From Blepharisma stoltei ATCC 30299 (lineage: Eukaryota > Protista > Ciliophora), in assembly GCA_965603825.1 (NCBI GenBank), contig CBFDEM010000030.1, positions 572,331 through 636,330 of the forward strand: 64,000 nucleotides of DNA. Reading direction: 5' to 3'. Below are positions 48,600 through 64,000 of this stretch, one piece after another; within the stretch, counting starts at the first letter, position 1; each line of letters starts with the position of its first letter. The position numbers and the translations under genes were made by a program. Under the pieces are notes generated by a model. The model was not told where the DNA came from. It saw nothing but the letters and a program-made list of their open reading frames with translations, and searched no databases.

Positions 48600-49060
48600 A
48601 ATGCGCATCCCAATTTTACGCAAGTAAAAAAGAGAGCATGACTTCAAAAATATGAAAAAATCCTGAAATTATGCATCTCCAAATCGTACGCCAATAGCAG
48701 GAGCTCAAATAGCCCTTTGAATAGCGAATTCCAAAGATTGACAAAAAACTGCTGGATTTTTGAGTGCTTAGGGTATGGAGTTTGACTCTACAAAGTAAAA
48801 AAAAATTGAAATTATGCATATCTTAATCGTGCTCCAACAATTCAAACTGGTTTCAGAAATTCATGGAAAAACCCAAGGTTTTTGCTGATATTTTGGTATT
48901 TTAGGGGGGAAATGGAGCAAAAATTCGCATATTAAAAAAAATTGCACATCTCCCAATTATGCATCGATAGCCAAAGATTAGACAGTCTTTAACTAAGTTA
49001 GTTCCAGAAATGAATAAAACAAATTAGATTTTATTAAGCTTTTGTGTACTTTAGCACTGA
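48600..49060. repeat. Degenerate non-coding tandem repeat, about 3 units of 130-150 bp
   Basis: TGAAATTATGCAT at 48664 and 48807, a related AAATTGCACATCTCCCAATTATGC near 48938, and recurring TTTG...TTAG and TTCAGAAAT blocks. Confidence 0.5.
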
Positions 49061-49390
49061 ATAAATTATTTTTTTGAATAATTCTCTACTTCTTTTAACT
49101 GCCTAAATGCTGTTTTATTATACCACGTCTGTGCCTGAAATGTCTGCAATGCTTCTGTGAGAATTTAAGAAAGCTTAGAGATTCCCTCTCAAGTTTGCGC
49201 TTCAAATACATCCGTCGTTATGTGAGCCTCCTCTAGATCCTCGCTAGATACTATAGAAATATATAAAAAATTATTTTTAAAGCAGCATTAATAGAACTTA
49301 AGTATTTCAAAAGTTAATGGCATTAATAAATAAATAAATATAATTTTCATCTATTATGCTTATTAAAAATTTGTAATTTGTAATAAAATA

Positions 49391-49975
49391 ATGCATAGGT
49401 TTCGTATGCCATCTGATTACGAAGTCATGATTTCTTGTACAGAACTCGATATCGCCAATTCAAGTCCTAGAAACCGGGGTCTACAAGTGAGCAAATCCAA
49501 ATTAAGAGATATGGTCCGAAGCGCCAAAGAACAAAAACTCCAGCTTGCGAAAGACAAAATGGCGATAATCAAATTGTCAAAGGAGCTTAAAAACCAAGAA
49601 AAATCACTGAATAGTGAAGAGGAAATTCTTAAAAAAGAAAAAATTGCTCTTCAACAACAGCGTATGGAGCTGGATGACTTGAAGGCGAAATTAAGCCATG
49701 ATCAAGCTAAGTTAAATCAACTTAGAGAAAAGTTGGGAGTTGAAAACAACCAAGTCAGCCAAGCCCTTGAAGATTTGCGACTAAAGGCTGCTGAAATCAA
49801 TAAGCAAAGATGTGACATAAAGAAAGGATCTCCTTTAGGAGAGAAAAAAAATAAAGCCCAAGCATCATGCCCTAGCTTCCAAGACTTTAATGAACAATTA
49901 AAACAAAAAAATCACGAAAGAAAAAACCAATTCCGAACAGAAGCAAGGCAAAATTCCTTAGAAATCTGGCTTTAG
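49391..49975 (+). CDS. Coiled-coil hypothetical protein
   Basis: 194-aa ORF with heptad pattern; ends in TAG. Confidence 0.7.
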   Translation: MHRFRMPSDYEVMISCTELDIANSSPRNRGLQVSKSKLRDMVRSAKEQKLQLAKDKMAIIKLSKELKNQEKSLNSEEEILKKEKIALQQQRMELDDLKAKLSHDQAKLNQLREKLGVENNQVSQALEDLRLKAAEINKQRCDIKKGSPLGEKKNKAQASCPSFQDFNEQLKQKNHERKNQFRTEARQNSLEIWL

Positions 49976-50124
49976 CCATTTTAAGCGCCGATTTTTATAA
50001 TTAACGATATTTCACATCTAAACTCTCCTCCTTAATTTTTTGCAAAAAATAAAATTCCTCCACACAATATCTAAACAACTCACAATTTTTCGCAAAATAT
50101 TTATGTCGAATAAATCTTCTTGTA

Positions 50125-50709
50125 ATGGAATTTCCTTCATACAAAGTCATCACACTAGGTAGCTACGGAGTCGGCAAAACCTGCTTACTCATCCGAGCCA
50201 CAGAAGAAAACTGTGTCTTTTCTTCAAACTACATGACAACAATTGGGGTGGATTTCAAAACTAAGCTTCACAACTACAATGGCCAGTTTTTCAAACTCAT
50301 GATTTGGGACACTGCTGGCCAAGAGCGATTCCACCATATAAACCGATTATATTATAACGGTTGCAACGCTGTGATCCTAGTCTACGACATCACAAGTCTT
50401 TTTTCATTCGAAAAAGTCCCCACATTCCTTGACGATTACAACAAAAACACAGATGGGAGTTCAGCTGTGATCCTAGTTGGGAACAAAAGTGACTCCTTAA
50501 ATCGACAAGTCTCCTACGAGCAAGGCAAAACCCTTGCAAACCAACTAGGAATTCCATTCATAGAATGCTCAGCTTACACTGGGGAAAACGTAAATCAACT
50601 GTTCGATATTCTGATCCAGCAGCTCACAAAAGACAATAAACTGCCGACGCCAGCAGCAAAACAAACATTTGTGGTATCGAAAACGAAGAAGAAAAAATCC
50701 TGTTGCTAA
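50125..50709 (+). CDS. Rab-family small GTPase
   Basis: GSYGVGKT, TIGVDF, WDTAGQE, GNKSD, ECSA, C-terminal CC. Confidence 0.95.
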   Translation: MEFPSYKVITLGSYGVGKTCLLIRATEENCVFSSNYMTTIGVDFKTKLHNYNGQFFKLMIWDTAGQERFHHINRLYYNGCNAVILVYDITSLFSFEKVPTFLDDYNKNTDGSSAVILVGNKSDSLNRQVSYEQGKTLANQLGIPFIECSAYTGENVNQLFDILIQQLTKDNKLPTPAAKQTFVVSKTKKKKSCC

Positions 50710-50730
50710 AATTAAGCATTAATCCTTTAA

Positions 50731-51105
50731 TTATTTCTGCACTATATTCACGAGTTTTTCAAACCTCCCCCGGATTCTTCTGGCAAGCTGCATATCTTTG
50801 ACGAGTAAAGTTACCCTTTTGGCGTGAAGGGAGCAAAGATTGGAGTCTTCAAACAGGCCGACGAGAAAATCCTCGGCTGAATGCTGCATGGCTTCTACTG
50901 CAAGTTTGCTTCATTTTAAAGAACTGTCTTTGGTTAAACCTAAAGATACGTCTAATAGGAGCTTTTTGAAGGCTTTTTTGCCTAGCAAAAGTTCAGTTGA
51001 GCTTTGGTATTTCCTGATATCTTTTTGGACTCGGACTCCAGGGAAGTATTTTTCAATTATTTTGGCTTTGGGCTTTTCTTGAGGGCTGGTTACGGCTTTT
51101 GACAT
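50731..51105 (-). CDS. Divergent histone H3 variant, CenH3/CENP-A-like, 124 aa
   Basis: Through TGA 50911-50913: [45 protein letters not shown](W)[48 protein letters not shown]; TAA at 50731-50733. Confidence 0.9.
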
Positions 51106-51167
51106 TATGGCGGTATCAATTTATAATAAAAAAAGTATGTAAAAAATTAACGATTCAGAGGATATAA

Positions 51168-52958
51168 ATGGAAAGAAGTAATTTCTATCATATAACCTCC
51201 GACAAGGAAATAGCCAGAAATAATGGGATAGCTTTAAAAGATTACGAAATTAACCCTCAAAAAGCAAGTTCAGGGGCCCAAAAATTCGAAATAAAACTTG
51301 ACAGCCACTCTTCATTGTTTAAAAATGCATTAAGTCATGACTATTTTAACCCAATGAAAAGAAAATCATTAGAAGAAATCTTAATTGAAGACAAGAGAAC
51401 TGACCCACCCAAAGAAACTCCAATTGAAGACAAAAAAACCAAGCTTAATGCATTTCTTCCAGAAATTATAGAAGAGCATTCTGTTGGGGAAAAAGAATCA
51501 ATGATTTCAGAAAGAATTAAAGAGGCTTCAGCAGAAGAGAACAAAGCAGAAATAAACGCAGACCCAGTCCAAGTGCCTTCATTAATGCAATGCTTAATGA
51601 GCGGACCAAAAGTGCAGATCCTGATGGAAAAGCCAAAAGAACTGACAGCCTGTGACTTTCCTATTGACGCTGAAGAAAATTATATCCCTCCTGAGGAAAG
51701 CGAAATAATCAGTGTTTCTTCAAATGTCTCCTTTATGCCTCAGAAGTACCAAAAAGGAGTCCAAACTGCTTCAGGGTGCAATTTAAGCATTTCTACATTA
51801 GCAAGTATAAGCATTGAGTCATATTCAACCAAAGGAGAATCCAAACACGAAAGAGAGCTACTAAACCTGTCAGAAGACATTTCTTTTGCTACAGTTATTG
51901 AGAAAAACACCCCAGTAGGGAACCATCCAGAAATTTCAAGCCTTGTTAACAGCCAGTCTCAATCAAGATCATACACTCCTACTAATAGTATTTATATAGC
52001 TCCTTTTTCACTTGACTCTGCCATGCTTTATAATGGAGCTAAAGAGCCTGCTAGTGATGAAAAAGAGCTTTTAAGCTTGATTAGGCAGCTTCAACACGAT
52101 ATGGAAAAGCTGAAACAAGACCAAACAGACCAAAAGATATATAGACAAAAATATCAAGAAGCAGACAAAGAGAACGAGAGTCTCAGAGCTGAAATTGAGA
52201 ACATAAAAAAGAACATGGCAGAGAAAAGCGATTTTAAAAAGCTTGATGATTTATTTGAACAAAAACAAGTTATTGTTGAAGCAACAATAGATATTCTTCA
52301 GCAGCTTAAAGAAGAAATTGATTTCATGAAAAAAGAAATAAAAGATATCAAAGAAACAATGGTCTTCAATGAAGGCCATCTAAATGCGTCTGATAAAAAA
52401 ATTGATGATATTTTCAATAGGGTTTCTGAGTGGAAAAATAGTCAAGATACCCATGAAAATAGCGAAATCCATGAAAAATGTATGATGGAAATTGACATCC
52501 TTAAACAAAGCAGCAAAAGCTTAAGCGAAGAAATTAAACTTATTAAGGACTCAATCACAAATTCATTGCCAACTGAAGGAATAATACATGAGCGGAAAGA
52601 CACGAGGTTTAGTGAACCAATTTTTCATGAAGAATTTTACGAAAATTTCGATGAGCTAAATTATGAGCAGCCTATGGAGTTGATTTCTTGTGGCAAGCCA
52701 AAAATTAAAAATTCGCTTGTGGCACTTTCTGATTTACAAGAAAACCGATTCCTCATTAATGATCTTCAAGAGAAACTTCAATCGTTAGAGGAACAGAAAA
52801 TTGCTCTTGAAAATGAGTATTTTCAGCTCCCAGAAATGAGCCGAAGTATGAGAACGAAAAAGAGAAAACAGACGCTAGAGCTTGAGCTGTCGATCAATTC
52901 AAATAGCATTTCCTCAGTCAAAGATAAAATCAGAAAATATAGTCTCCCTTGCAGATAG
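51168..52958 (+). CDS. Coiled-coil protein with C-terminal MPHOSPH9/enkurin-like helical hairpin
   Basis: 596-aa ORF; C-terminal LEEQKIALENEYFQLP...RKQTLELEL...ISSVKDKIRKY. Confidence 0.7.
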   Translation: MERSNFYHITSDKEIARNNGIALKDYEINPQKASSGAQKFEIKLDSHSSLFKNALSHDYFNPMKRKSLEEILIEDKRTDPPKETPIEDKKTKLNAFLPEIIEEHSVGEKESMISERIKEASAEENKAEINADPVQVPSLMQCLMSGPKVQILMEKPKELTACDFPIDAEENYIPPEESEIISVSSNVSFMPQKYQKGVQTASGCNLSISTLASISIESYSTKGESKHERELLNLSEDISFATVIEKNTPVGNHPEISSLVNSQSQSRSYTPTNSIYIAPFSLDSAMLYNGAKEPASDEKELLSLIRQLQHDMEKLKQDQTDQKIYRQKYQEADKENESLRAEIENIKKNMAEKSDFKKLDDLFEQKQVIVEATIDILQQLKEEIDFMKKEIKDIKETMVFNEGHLNASDKKIDDIFNRVSEWKNSQDTHENSEIHEKCMMEIDILKQSSKSLSEEIKLIKDSITNSLPTEGIIHERKDTRFSEPIFHEEFYENFDELNYEQPMELISCGKPKIKNSLVALSDLQENRFLINDLQEKLQSLEEQKIALENEYFQLPEMSRSMRTKKRKQTLELELSINSNSISSVKDKIRKYSLPCR

Positions 52959-53233
52959 CTTATGATGTAAAATTTTGTTATCAATTATCATTTAACCTTT
53001 TATATTTTAATATGTAAAGCGTTTCAAGCATAAATACCCTTTTGTTAAACATATATAAATCTTATAAATCTTATAAACCATTAAAAATCAAAAATATAAT
53101 AAATTCGACCTTAGACAAGTGAATTTCTATCTTTCTATTTTACAGAAGCATTTATGAGTGAAATTTCCAATATATAATCATAAAAAATATTTTTAATTAA
53201 TACTAATTGCCTTGTTAAAAGTCTAGTCTACAA

Positions 53234-54295
53234 TTATTCATTAAAGTTTGGAAATCCATTGAATGCTGAGTTTTTAAAAATCAACGGACTGTATCCAGGA
53301 CTCAGAACTGAGCTGAAGTTTGGTGTCAGAGTTGGGAGTCCAGGAGTGTTTATGCTTGGTGTACGTCCGAACCCTGGCGTCCCATCACCGAATACTGGAA
53401 AATCTGGAATTTCTCCAAGCTTTGGAATCGGATTCACAAAGGAATCAAAACTTATCTGGTTTTTATCTTTACTAATCTCTTCAGGCGGCAATGGGGATAA
53501 TGCGTCTAGCCCAAAAATTGGGCTAGCTGATATCTCCTCTTTTACTATCTTTCCTATGGTAACCTTTCCAGGGCTGTTTTCATTTGTTTCAGATTCTTCC
53601 CCCCCTTCTCCGTCCTCAATATTTTCTAACTTTTCTTCTTTTTCTTCCTTAACAGAGCTGTCCATTGCGATTCTCAGGATATCGTCCACACAATGGTTGT
53701 AATCAATAATTTGGACTTCTCCAAGGCCAAGATAAGGCTTGCTGTATTCTTTGAACCGATTGTTTATTTCTTTGGAGTCAATTTTAAGCAAATGTTTGTG
53801 TGTGCTGTGCCAGCTTTCATAGCTTTTTAAGAAATTTGCATTCATTTTTTCAAGATACACGTTAAACGGCTTTAAGTTTTCATTGAGATAGGACTTTGAA
53901 GCATACGCTGCAAAAAGAAGGTCTAAATAGCAAGTGCTTGAAAGGCTTTTCCAGTCAATTTTTTGTAAATAGATTGTCCACAAAGAAGCTTCCATTTCAT
54001 TGAGGGCAAGGTCTTTTGCAGCAGAAATTAATTGCTTCATTGCAGCTTTTTTGTATGCAGCATTGAGGCAGGCTGATGTTTGGACTACTTTGTAGAGGAT
54101 GTTGATGATTGTATTTGATAGACTGAACTCGGTGTATTCAGAACGAATTGCCTCGTATTCTTTCAAGTGATACTCTTCTTCTTCATTGTCAAGAGATACT
54201 TCTTCTTCAATCTTCAATTTTTTTTGGGGCTTTCTTCTTGGGCGATCTATTGAACTTTTTTTCACAGTTTCTTGATCGCTTGAATTTTTTGACAT
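53234..54295 (-). CDS. Hypothetical protein with NLS-like N-terminus and SP/TP-rich tail
   Basis: Intact 353-aa ORF. Confidence 0.75.
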   Translation of the reverse strand: MSKNSSDQETVKKSSIDRPRRKPQKKLKIEEEVSLDNEEEEYHLKEYEAIRSEYTEFSLSNTIINILYKVVQTSACLNAAYKKAAMKQLISAAKDLALNEMEASLWTIYLQKIDWKSLSSTCYLDLLFAAYASKSYLNENLKPFNVYLEKMNANFLKSYESWHSTHKHLLKIDSKEINNRFKEYSKPYLGLGEVQIIDYNHCVDDILRIAMDSSVKEEKEEKLENIEDGEGGEESETNENSPGKVTIGKIVKEEISASPIFGLDALSPLPPEEISKDKNQISFDSFVNPIPKLGEIPDFPVFGDGTPGFGRTPSINTPGLPTLTPNFSSVLSPGYSPLIFKNSAFNGFPNFNE

Positions 54296-54881
54296 AATGA
54301 CTATTAAAACAATAGATTTTTATTGCTTAATTGATTAAAGTAAAACGCTCCTGATCCCCTATCAGCAAAATATACTTAGAGCATGAAATTATCACTAAGC
54401 TTATCATTCAGATATAAAAAGTTTTCCATTAAAAATTAATTAATTTTCTGTTGAACTGATAATTTTGGTTAAAATATAAATAAAGTATTAAAGCCTTCTT
54501 GAGTAAATATCATCATTTATTAAAGTTAAAAGACTTGAAAGCTATTTTATCAGACAAATTGAGAGAGAGCATTGCTTATTCAATTTTATTTTTTGATAAA
54601 TATGAGGGATTTATTAGCAAAAAAATGTGTATTATTTTAAATAACTCTTTATAAAATTATTTAGTTGTTTCAGCAACAGCAAATTAACTACTTTTAAAGA
54701 AAATTCATATTACAAGAGTTTATTAAAAAGATTAATTATATAATGAATGACCTTGGGAATTTAATATAATTTATAAAAATTTTGCTCTAGGTTCTTATGT
54801 TCTATTAACATGGACAAAATTTCATAAATTTTGAAATAAAATCTTTATTATATAATCATATCTAATAATTAATATATCCTG

Positions 54882-62049: not shown

Positions 62050-64000
62050 TTAGGGTGTTAGGGTGTTAGGGTGTTAGGGTGTTAGGGTGTTAGGGTGTTA
62101 GGGTGTTAGGGTGTTAGGGTGTTAGGGTGTTAGGGTGTTAGGGTGTTAGGGTGTTAGGGTGTTAGGGTGTTAGGGTGTTAGGGTGTTAGGGTGTTAGGGT
62201 GTTAGGGTGTTAGGGTGTTAGGGGTGTTAGGGTGTTAGGGTGTTAGGGTGTTAGGGTGTTAGGGTGTTAGGGTGTTAGGGTGTTAGGGTGTTAGGGTGTT
62301 AGGGTGTTAGGGTGTTAGGGTGTTAGGGTGTTAGGGTGTTAGGGTGTTAGGGTGTTAGGGTGTTAGGGTGTTAGGGTGTTAGGGTGTTAGGGTGTTAGGG
62401 TGTTAGGGTGTTAGGGTGTTAGGGTGTTAGGGTGTTAGGGTGTTAGGGTGTTAGGGTGTTAGGGTGTTAGGGTGTTAGGGTGTTAGGGTGTTAGGGGTGT
62501 TAGGGTGTTAGGGTGTGTTAGGGTGTTAGGGTGTTAGGGTGTTAGGGTGTTAGGGTGTTAGGGTGTTAGGGTGTTAGGGTGTTAGGGTGTTAGGGTGTTA
62601 GGGTGTTAGGGTGTTAGGGTGTTAGGGTGTTAGGGTGTTAGGGTGTTAGGGTGTTAGGGTGTTAGGGTGTTAGGGTGTTAGGGTGTTAGGGTGTTAGGGT
62701 GTTAGGGTGTTAGGGTGTTAGGGTGTTAGGGTGTTAGGGTGTTAGGGTGTTAGGGTGTTAGGGTGTTAGGGTGTTAGGGTGTTAGGGTGTTAGGGTGTTA
62801 GGGTGTTAGGGTGTTAGGGTGTTAGGGTGTTAGGGTGTTAGGGTGTTAGGGTGTTAGGGTGTTAGGGTGTTAGGGTGTTAGGGTGTTAGGGTGTTAGGGT
62901 GTTAGGGTGTTAGGGTGTTAGGGTGTTAGGGTGTTAGGGTGTTAGGGTGTTAGGGTGTTAGGGTGTTAGGGTGTTAGGGTGTTAGGGTGTTAGGGTGTTA
63001 GGGTGTTAGGGTGTTAGGGTGTTAGGGTGTTAGGGTGTAGGGTGTTAGGGTGTTAGGGTGTTAGGGTGTTAGGGTGTTAGGGTGTTAGGGTGTTAGGGTG
63101 TTAGGGTGTTAGGGTGTTAGGGTGTTAGGGTGTTAGGGTGTTAGGGTGTTAGGGTGTTAGGGTGTTAGGGTGTTAGGGTGTTAGGGTGTTAGGGTGTTAG
63201 GGTGTTAGGGTGTTAGGGTGTTAGGGTGTTAGGGTGTTAGGGTGTTAGGGTGTTAGGGTGTTAGGGTGTTAGGGTGTTAGGGTGTTAGGGTGTTAGGGTG
63301 TTAGGGTGTTAGGGTGTTAGGGTGTTAGGGTGTTAGGGTGTTAGGGTGTTAGGGGTGTTAGGGTGTTAGGGTAGGTGTTAGGGTGTTAGGGTGTTAGGGT
63401 GTTAGGGTGTTAGGGTGTTGGTTAGGGTGTTAGGGTGTTAGGGTGTTAGGGTGTTAGGGTGTTAGGGTGTTAGGGTGTTAGGGTGTTAGGGTGTTAGGGT
63501 GTTAGGGTGTTAGGGTGTTAGGGTGTTAGGGTGTTAGGGTGTTAGGGTGTTAGGGTGTTAGGGTGTTAGGGTGTTAGGGTGTTAGGGTGTTAGGGTGTTA
63601 GGGTGTTAGGGTGTTAGGGTGTTAGGGTGTTAGGGTGTTAGGGTGTTAGGGTGTTAGGGTGTTAGGGTGTTAGGGTGTTAGGGTGTTAGGGTGTTAGGGT
63701 GTAGGTGTTAGGGTGTTAGGGTGTTAGGGTGTTAGGGTGTTAGGGTGTTAGGGTGTTAGGTGTTAGGGTGTTAGGGTGTTAGGGTGTTAGGGTGTTAGGG
63801 TGTTAGGGTGTTAGGGTGTTAGGGTGTTAGGGTGTTAGGGTGTTAGGGTGTTAGGGTGTTAGGTGTTAGGGTTAGGGTGTTAGGGTGTTAGGGTGTTAGG
63901 GTGTTAGGGTGTTAGGGTGTTAGGGTGTTAGGGTGTTAGGGTGTTAGGGTGTTAGGGTGTTAGGGTGTTAGGTGTTAGGGTGTTAGGGTGTTAGGGTGTT
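62050..64000 (+). repeat. Telomere (TGTTAGGG)n, i.e. CCCTAACA on the opposite strand, about 240 units
   Basis: Directly visible; G-rich strand runs 5'->3' toward the end of the window. Confidence 0.99.

Follow-up and report, generated by a model that had tools for sequence, protein, structure and literature searches.

A short-tailed histone H3 variant with a UGA-encoded tryptophan in Blepharisma stoltei, one of two candidate centromeric H3 paralogues

Does the heterotrich ciliate Blepharisma stoltei encode a centromeric histone H3 (CenH3), and is a short H3-like gene on contig 30 of its genome such a histone? To our knowledge, CenH3 is present in almost every eukaryote whose kinetochores are conventional, so that one was to be expected in Blepharisma and the surprise of meeting it is modest. 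The published genome analysis observed no CenH3-like histone: CenH3 of Paramecium and Tetrahymena is longer than H3, and the non-detection is explained by longer, divergent H3s having been sought (PMC9942806 SI). Our literature search found no description of a Blepharisma CenH3 either. The gene studied here lies in a window, i.e. the whole stretch of 64,000 nucleotides that was analyzed (G000:C30:572331-636330), whose last base is also that of contig 30 (636,330 bases); a telomeric repeat (GGGTGTTA)n occupies window positions 62053-64000. The original prediction had read a 64-residue open reading frame of this window as part of a hidden H3 variant, and proposed that it was the centromeric H3. 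The features of the locus, in window coordinates, are as follows.

50734..51105, minus strand: coding sequence of the contig-30 gene (short-tailed H3 variant), 124 codons in a single exon, with its ATG at 51103-51105
50731..50733, minus strand: stop codon TAA, which also ends the contig-38 paralogue
50911..50913, minus strand: in-frame TGA, codon 65, read as Trp, at the position of H3 Phe84; TGG in the paralogue
51055..51105, minus strand: residues 1-17, the N-terminal tail, for which the alignment shows no relation to that of H3
50914..50943, minus strand: end of alpha1 and loop 1 (residues 55-64); by the alignments, H3 has two residues fewer here
50734..50766, minus strand: hydrophobic C-terminal extension, residues 114-124, beginning with RFEK, eight residues longer than in H3 in the alignment
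51106..51167, no strand: AT-rich spacer of 62 nt to the divergent neighbour (ATG at 51168), presumed shared promoter region
50125..50709, plus strand: Ras/Rab-family GTPase, convergent neighbour, given for context only (Pfam PF00071, 168.7 bits)

Translated as it stands, the minus strand of 50731-51105 gives 64 residues, a TGA, 59 residues and a TAA. When the two pieces were searched apart, each matched Pfam PF00125 on its own, with 20.1 and 58.1 bits. Read through the TGA, for which we used either the database record P0003 or a translation with table 4, the protein matched the same family with 85-89 bits over profile positions 19-122 of 122, the 89-bit match spanning residues 7-112. The fragment does become a complete H3 fold once TGA is read as Trp, as had been proposed. 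Under the standard code, or under table 11, the frame ends at codon 65, and the locus would then be a broken gene, or a fragment of 64 residues without a full H3 fold. UGA is however a Trp codon in B. stoltei, whose genome was annotated by its authors with table 4 (PMC9942806 preprint text), and TGA makes up 52 of the 173 Trp codons (about 30%) in the 35 longest table-4 open reading frames of the window. Moreover, this TGA aligns with the TGG of the paralogue and with the invariant Trp of CenH3s, the 59 codons that follow it are the most constrained part of the gene, and both genes end with TAA. A broken gene is, in our opinion, extremely improbable.

Since UGA is a routine Trp codon in B. stoltei, its use at codon 65 has no special meaning, and illustrates only that open reading frame tracks made with the standard code split the genes of this organism. 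Nor is the gene hidden, as had been claimed, except to such standard-code or table-11 tracks: the exact protein of 124 residues, with W65, is already present in NCBI, UniRef and nr (P0003), probably under a generic name.

Four samples from a single 2022 study cover the locus, in the form of assembled, unstranded contigs for which the label RNA is a guess. These RNA-type contigs behave like transcriptomes. Over 48600-53400, they form gene-sized pieces, with the spacers and 48600-49394 uncovered in all four runs; positions 51113-51157 of the AT-rich spacer are bare in four of four. Neighbouring pieces differ in depth up to about 40-fold, and one piece has a poly-T end at 53212, beside the stop codon of a minus-strand open reading frame. 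In each of the four runs, one contig spans both the Rab gene and the H3 variant and ends at 51088-51112, where the ATG of the latter lies (51105), and none of the runs has an alternative letter at codon 65. The stop codons of the two genes are 21 nt apart (50710-50730), so that their convergent transcripts would overlap at the 3' ends, which would account for the merging of both genes into one contig. Given the tiny UTRs of the B. stoltei genome (PMC9942806 preprint text), it is unlikely that in four samples the 3'UTR of the Rab gene should stop, by chance, just where the H3 gene starts. We therefore take the contig-30 gene as transcribed; strand, level and timing are not readable from merged unstranded contigs.

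The contig-30 protein was then compared, in an anatomy alignment, with the canonical H3 of the same genome and with named CENP-A/Cse4 proteins. Canonical B. stoltei H3 (nine genes, e.g. L001, L003 and L009) has the same fold, with an identity of about 45% overall and near identity in the alpha2-alpha3 core. It differs by its ARTKQTARK tail with K4, K9, K27 and K36, by Q68 and F84, by a shorter loop 1, by P121 and by a GER(S/T) end. In the contig-30 protein, only about 17 residues, unrelated to that tail, precede the KYFPG motif; ARTKQTARK is absent, and so are the K4, K9, K27 and K36 contexts. Residues F46-K47 correspond to F67-Q68 of H3, the conserved glutamine of alpha1 being replaced by K47. 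At this position, A or S is found in 14 of the 16 named CenH3 rows; the remaining two are a frog CENP-A with Q and a fungal row with a proline. From Phe46 to W65 there are 19 residues, against 17 in H3, which makes loop 1 two residues longer than in all nine canonical genes and equal in length to that of the frog CENP-A rows; as in yeast Cse4, this loop carries a TKD motif. W65 itself stands at the position of H3 F84, where Trp is invariant among the 16 named CenH3s (alignment A1). The proline of RVTIMPKD (P121) is changed to valine, and is replaced in several CenH3 rows also. Finally, 11 residues (RFEK...) follow IRG, instead of 3 in H3. Their RF matches the IRGQF end of Cse4 in the alignment, and the motif RFE..(I/L/V)(I/V)N of the extension is kept in three related proteins, P0001, P0002 and P0004.

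The marks listed in the original prediction, namely the missing ARTKQTAR tail, the loop 1 longer by two residues, the K, W and S at the Q68, F84 and T107 positions, and the C-terminal extension, were thus all recovered against the genome's own canonical H3. The change of T107 to S (S88) is not diagnostic here, because the canonical genes L006 and L009 also have S.

An AF2 monomer model of the protein has helices at residues 22-42, 44-57, 63-95 and 102-123, with loop 1 at residues 58-62. This is the pattern of H3, with the C-terminal extension prolonging the last helix. The confidence of the model is moderate, with a pLDDT of 68, as is usual for a lone histone; it falls below 50 for residues 1-4 and stays low to about residue 20. 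A Foldseek search with the model returned H3 chains only, with a TM of about 0.45, which confirms the fold and does not inform on the subtype.

How many other genes could fill the role of CenH3 in this organism? A profile of the 16 named CenH3s, all from animals and fungi, run against the genome (41.46 Mb, 64 contigs), detected 14 H3-type loci: the nine canonical genes, one degenerate gene (contig 26), two short-tailed genes (contigs 30 and 38) and two VIT-VWA proteins (contigs 23 and 27). The score of this profile was rejected as a discriminator, as canonical H3 scored higher than both short-tailed proteins (187 bits, versus 131 for the contig-30 protein). The contig-26 gene (L010, G000:C26:96391-96771, 133 aa) has an intact ARTKQTARK start, a deletion in the alphaN region and many substitutions in that region and in the core (LFGDSNF, QLVRRIRG); it resembles a canonical H3 gene in decay, or an aberrant one. 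In the long proteins of contigs 23 and 27, a very divergent H3 fold is internal (L012, G000:C23:542389-542763, and G000:C27:346315-346689); that of contig 23 counts at least 824 residues, and L012 has an end branch of 4.9 in the tree described below. These long proteins have N-terminal VIT and VWA_3 domains and are the most weakly expressed H3-domain proteins (PMC9942806 SI). Among the canonical genes, the open frame of L006 (L006:1465-1875, G000:C28:150987-151379) begins with ANAKQTARK and has no Met at the expected place. The two short-tailed genes are the only good CenH3 candidates among the 14 loci.

The same genome encodes three deeply divergent Ndc80-type genes with pairwise identities of 26-31%; the HEC domain of each contains an in-frame TGA.

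G000:C30:566604-568295: best Ndc80-type gene (L036), 124 bits, 564 aa, about 4 kb before the window and 55 kb from the contig-30 H3 gene
C38:395996-397201 and C53:228107-229279: the other two Ndc80-type genes

The presence of Ndc80-type genes on contigs 30 and 38, where the short-tailed H3 genes are also located, is probably a coincidence, given the 26-31% identity among the three. The CENP-C cupin domain (PF11699) had no match in the genome, which says little, as this domain is poorly conserved.

We next asked which histones the two short-tailed proteins resemble most. Searched by sequence against the PDB, the contig-30 protein had Cse4 as its top match (95.9 bits, with H3.3 at 95.6) over residues 9-115, and the contig-38 paralogue matched Cse4, Cnp1 and H3.3 with 113.5, 110 and 104 bits, respectively. 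The Cse4 alignments share with the contig-30 protein the TKD of loop 1, the Trp and the IRG-x-F end. In word searches of 5.8 billion proteins with both paralogues, the named matches past the closest kin were predominantly annotated as CENP-A, Cse4 or Cnp1; for the contig-30 protein, a few long multi-domain H3-like proteins scored above these CENP-A/Cse4 matches.

A maximum-likelihood tree of H3 folds, translated with UGA as Trp, was built from 37 rows. Its CenH3 references were drawn from the query's own hit lists, and its rows exclude CenH3 of Tetrahymena and Paramecium and include no verified ciliate CenH3. As the original prediction would have it, the contig-30 protein fell on the CenH3 side: every CenH3-like row grouped in one clade against canonical H3, with support 93/95, and within it the contig-30 protein belonged to a clade of five (100/97) with P0001, P0002, P0004 and P0121. 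Joining this clade of five with Blepharisma canonical H3, or with all canonical H3, was rejected by AU tests (p 6e-5 and 8e-4, respectively), for groups that were named after the tree had been seen and among divergent H3s for which long-branch attraction is possible.

These results bear on whether the gene could instead encode a diverged H3 without centromeric role, whose likeness to CenH3 would be due to convergence; replacement or development-specific H3s with little tail, as described from spirotrich ciliates, would be examples. Ciliates have many divergent H3 variants (PMC4770206; PMC9942806 SI), the monophyly of CenH3 is generally weakly resolved, with a support of 93/95 here that is below the highest class of the tool, and profile scores fail to separate the contig-30 protein from H3. 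Nevertheless, four independent marks coincide in this protein (loop 1 longer by two, loss of Q68, W84 and the C-terminal extension), in addition to the replacement of P121. The TKD of loop 1 and the IRG-x-F end are common to yeast Cse4, affinity with canonical H3 is rejected by the AU tests, and the genome has no other plausible CenH3, yet encodes Ndc80. We consider convergence very unlikely.

The best sequence matches of the Blepharisma pair among solved structures are Cse4 and Cnp1 (PDB 6uph, 7k78, 9lrv), with which W at F84, a longer loop 1 with TKD, the loss of Q68 and the IRG-x-F end are shared. The short tail is within the range of CenH3s, since Cnp1 of S. pombe has only 120 residues and a similarly short tail; that of Cse4 has about 130 residues, against about 17 in the contig-30 protein. 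Differences are that the C-terminus of the contig-30 protein reaches 9 residues past the F of IRG-x-F, unlike in Cse4 and Cnp1, and that its alpha1 is unusually changed, where H3 has LLIRKLPFQRLVR. Localization to centromeres has been shown for Cse4 and Cnp1, whereas the contig-30 protein is known here from its sequence.

Closer in lifestyle are the ciliates: Paramecium, Tetrahymena and Blepharisma all have an amitotic macronucleus, and the CenH3 of Tetrahymena thermophila, Cna1, is found in the micronucleus only. In Paramecium, three features led to the recognition of CenH3a and CenH3b, namely an elongated loop 1, a diverged N-terminal tail and an extended C-terminus; both proteins are present in micronuclei only (PMC4770206). 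They form a retained pair of paralogues like that of Blepharisma, with an identity of 90%, against 71% and saturated synonymous sites in the latter. The contig-30 protein (124 aa) is shorter than H3, whereas CenH3 of Paramecium and Tetrahymena is described as longer (PMC9942806 SI). In Loxodes, of the sister class, an H3 cluster is nested among cenH3, in a tree made of model organisms and Loxodes only (PMC11441545 SI).

The contig-38 paralogue (P0001, 122 aa, G000:C38:313302-313667, L011:1477-1842) is 100% identical to the NCBI protein CAG9325461.1 of B. stoltei. The two paralogues are 71% identical (BLASTP; 85 of 124 alignment columns) and align without gaps except in the last residues. The contig-38 protein has the same CenH3 hallmarks and the same C-terminal motif, and differs at the Q68 position, where it has A instead of K. 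Between the two genes, synonymous sites are saturated (pS 0.77) while pN is 0.21, and the frame of the contig-30 gene is intact; the duplication is therefore old, and both copies have been maintained. From W65 to N120, a stretch that includes alpha2-alpha3 and the C-terminal motif, only 6 of 56 residues differ.

The two copies did not evolve at the same pace. With P0004 as outgroup, a protein that stems from gene-dense eukaryotic environmental contigs, 16 unique changes were counted in the contig-30 protein and 4 in the contig-38 protein (Tajima test, p 0.007), and those of the contig-30 protein cluster in residues 41-56, in alpha1. The end branches of the tree are 0.5 and 0.026, respectively. 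The contig-30 copy is the derived, about fourfold faster-evolving one of two CenH3-type paralogues.

A related organism contains one more member of the family, P0002 (L031:5001-5372), whose identity with the contig-38 protein is 85% and with the contig-30 protein 73%. Its contig shares with the contig-38 locus a glucokinase, an aminotransferase and one downstream gene, and P0002 is, on account of these shared neighbours, the orthologue of the contig-38 gene. The tree paired P0002 with the contig-30 protein instead (99/91). This pairing is contradicted by synteny and opposes 6 sites to 3; we do not trust it, and regard it as an effect of a long branch and few informative sites. As for the contig-30 copy, the word search found neither an orthologue nor a closer relative among the 5.8 billion proteins.

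A segmental duplication between contigs 30 and 38 was also considered and is not clear, the matches between the two loci being limited to the H3 gene and a single neighbour (30% identity). That neighbour is an open reading frame of 361 residues without Pfam match (window 53237-54319, minus strand), near the contig-30 gene. Its relatives lie beside the paralogue (30% identical, G000:C38:315191-315673) and on the L031 contig (35%), and these genes may be what is left of an ancient duplication that took in two genes.

The existence of the paralogue modifies the proposal that the contig-30 gene is the centromeric H3. The CenH3-type class was supported by the hallmarks, by the Cse4/Cnp1 matches, by the clade and by the AU tests; the gene is not the sole candidate. 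A paralogue with a better fit to CenH3 had been named as one half of a refutation of this proposal, and as far as fit is concerned this is what we found for the contig-38 gene, which has the higher Cse4 score (113.5 versus 95.9 bits), fewer unique changes (4 versus 16) and a syntenic orthologue. It fits CenH3 at least as well as the contig-30 gene, and is arguably the genome's primary CenH3 candidate.

Is the contig-38 paralogue then the only working centromeric histone, the contig-30 gene being a CenH3-derived duplicate that is fading or has taken another role in chromatin, e.g. during meiosis, during macronuclear development or in a single class of micronuclei? The faster evolution of the contig-30 protein, with its changes concentrated in alpha1, would fit such a history, as would the synteny of P0002 with contig 38 and not with the contig-30 locus, the lack of a closer relative among the proteins searched, and a Cse4 match below that of the paralogue. 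Against it stand a frame kept intact in spite of saturated synonymous sites, a pN of 0.21, the near identity to the paralogue past W65, and the coverage by RNA-type contigs. Furthermore, retained pairs of centromeric histones are known, Paramecium CenH3a and CenH3b being both micronuclear (PMC4770206). We judge this possibility doubtful, although it deserves to be kept in mind.

The contig-30 gene is intact, transcribed and selectively maintained, and encodes a protein of H3 fold that has CenH3 marks and groups with CenH3. The best explanation, to which we give a probability of roughly 0.65, is that it would be a working centromeric histone of micronuclear chromosomes, as one of two CenH3-type (CENP-A/Cse4-type) H3 paralogues. 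By analogy with CenH3 of Tetrahymena and Paramecium, the protein would replace H3 in nucleosomes at micronuclear centromeres, both mitotic and meiotic, and would be expected to be missing from the macronucleus, which divides by amitosis. Its targeting surface for a dedicated chaperone may consist of the elongated loop 1 together with the alpha2 region, and the hydrophobic C-terminal extension might dock inner-kinetochore proteins, thereby linking the nucleosome to the Ndc80 outer kinetochore. Beside the contig-38 paralogue, the contig-30 copy may be either a second, possibly stage-specialized, centromeric histone or a derivative that is partly out of that role.

A more specific possibility, which we hold to be rather unlikely, is that the organism has two centromeric histones with separate functions, the conserved protein of contig 38 and the fast-evolving protein of contig 30 with its remodelled alpha1, which would differ by stage (mitosis versus meiosis) or by nucleus. 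In Blepharisma, a new macronucleus can arise by either of two developmental pathways. If this reading were true, the three divergent Ndc80-type genes would be a hint of kinetochore sets existing side by side, and Blepharisma would offer a natural system for the switching of centromere identity between nuclei that share one cytoplasm.

Our literature search found no description of the pair as CenH3; P0003 and P0001 are already in the databases. The gap reported for Blepharisma (PMC9942806 SI) is filled by two short-tailed genes in which the set of CenH3 marks is complete. As candidate centromere markers, the contig-30 and contig-38 genes offer direct access to the centromeres in the germline of a heterotrich. 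Two questions become testable in an early-branching ciliate lineage: whether centromeres are removed by programmed DNA elimination, as in Paramecium, and whether the loss of CenH3 from somatic nuclei is ancestral to ciliates.
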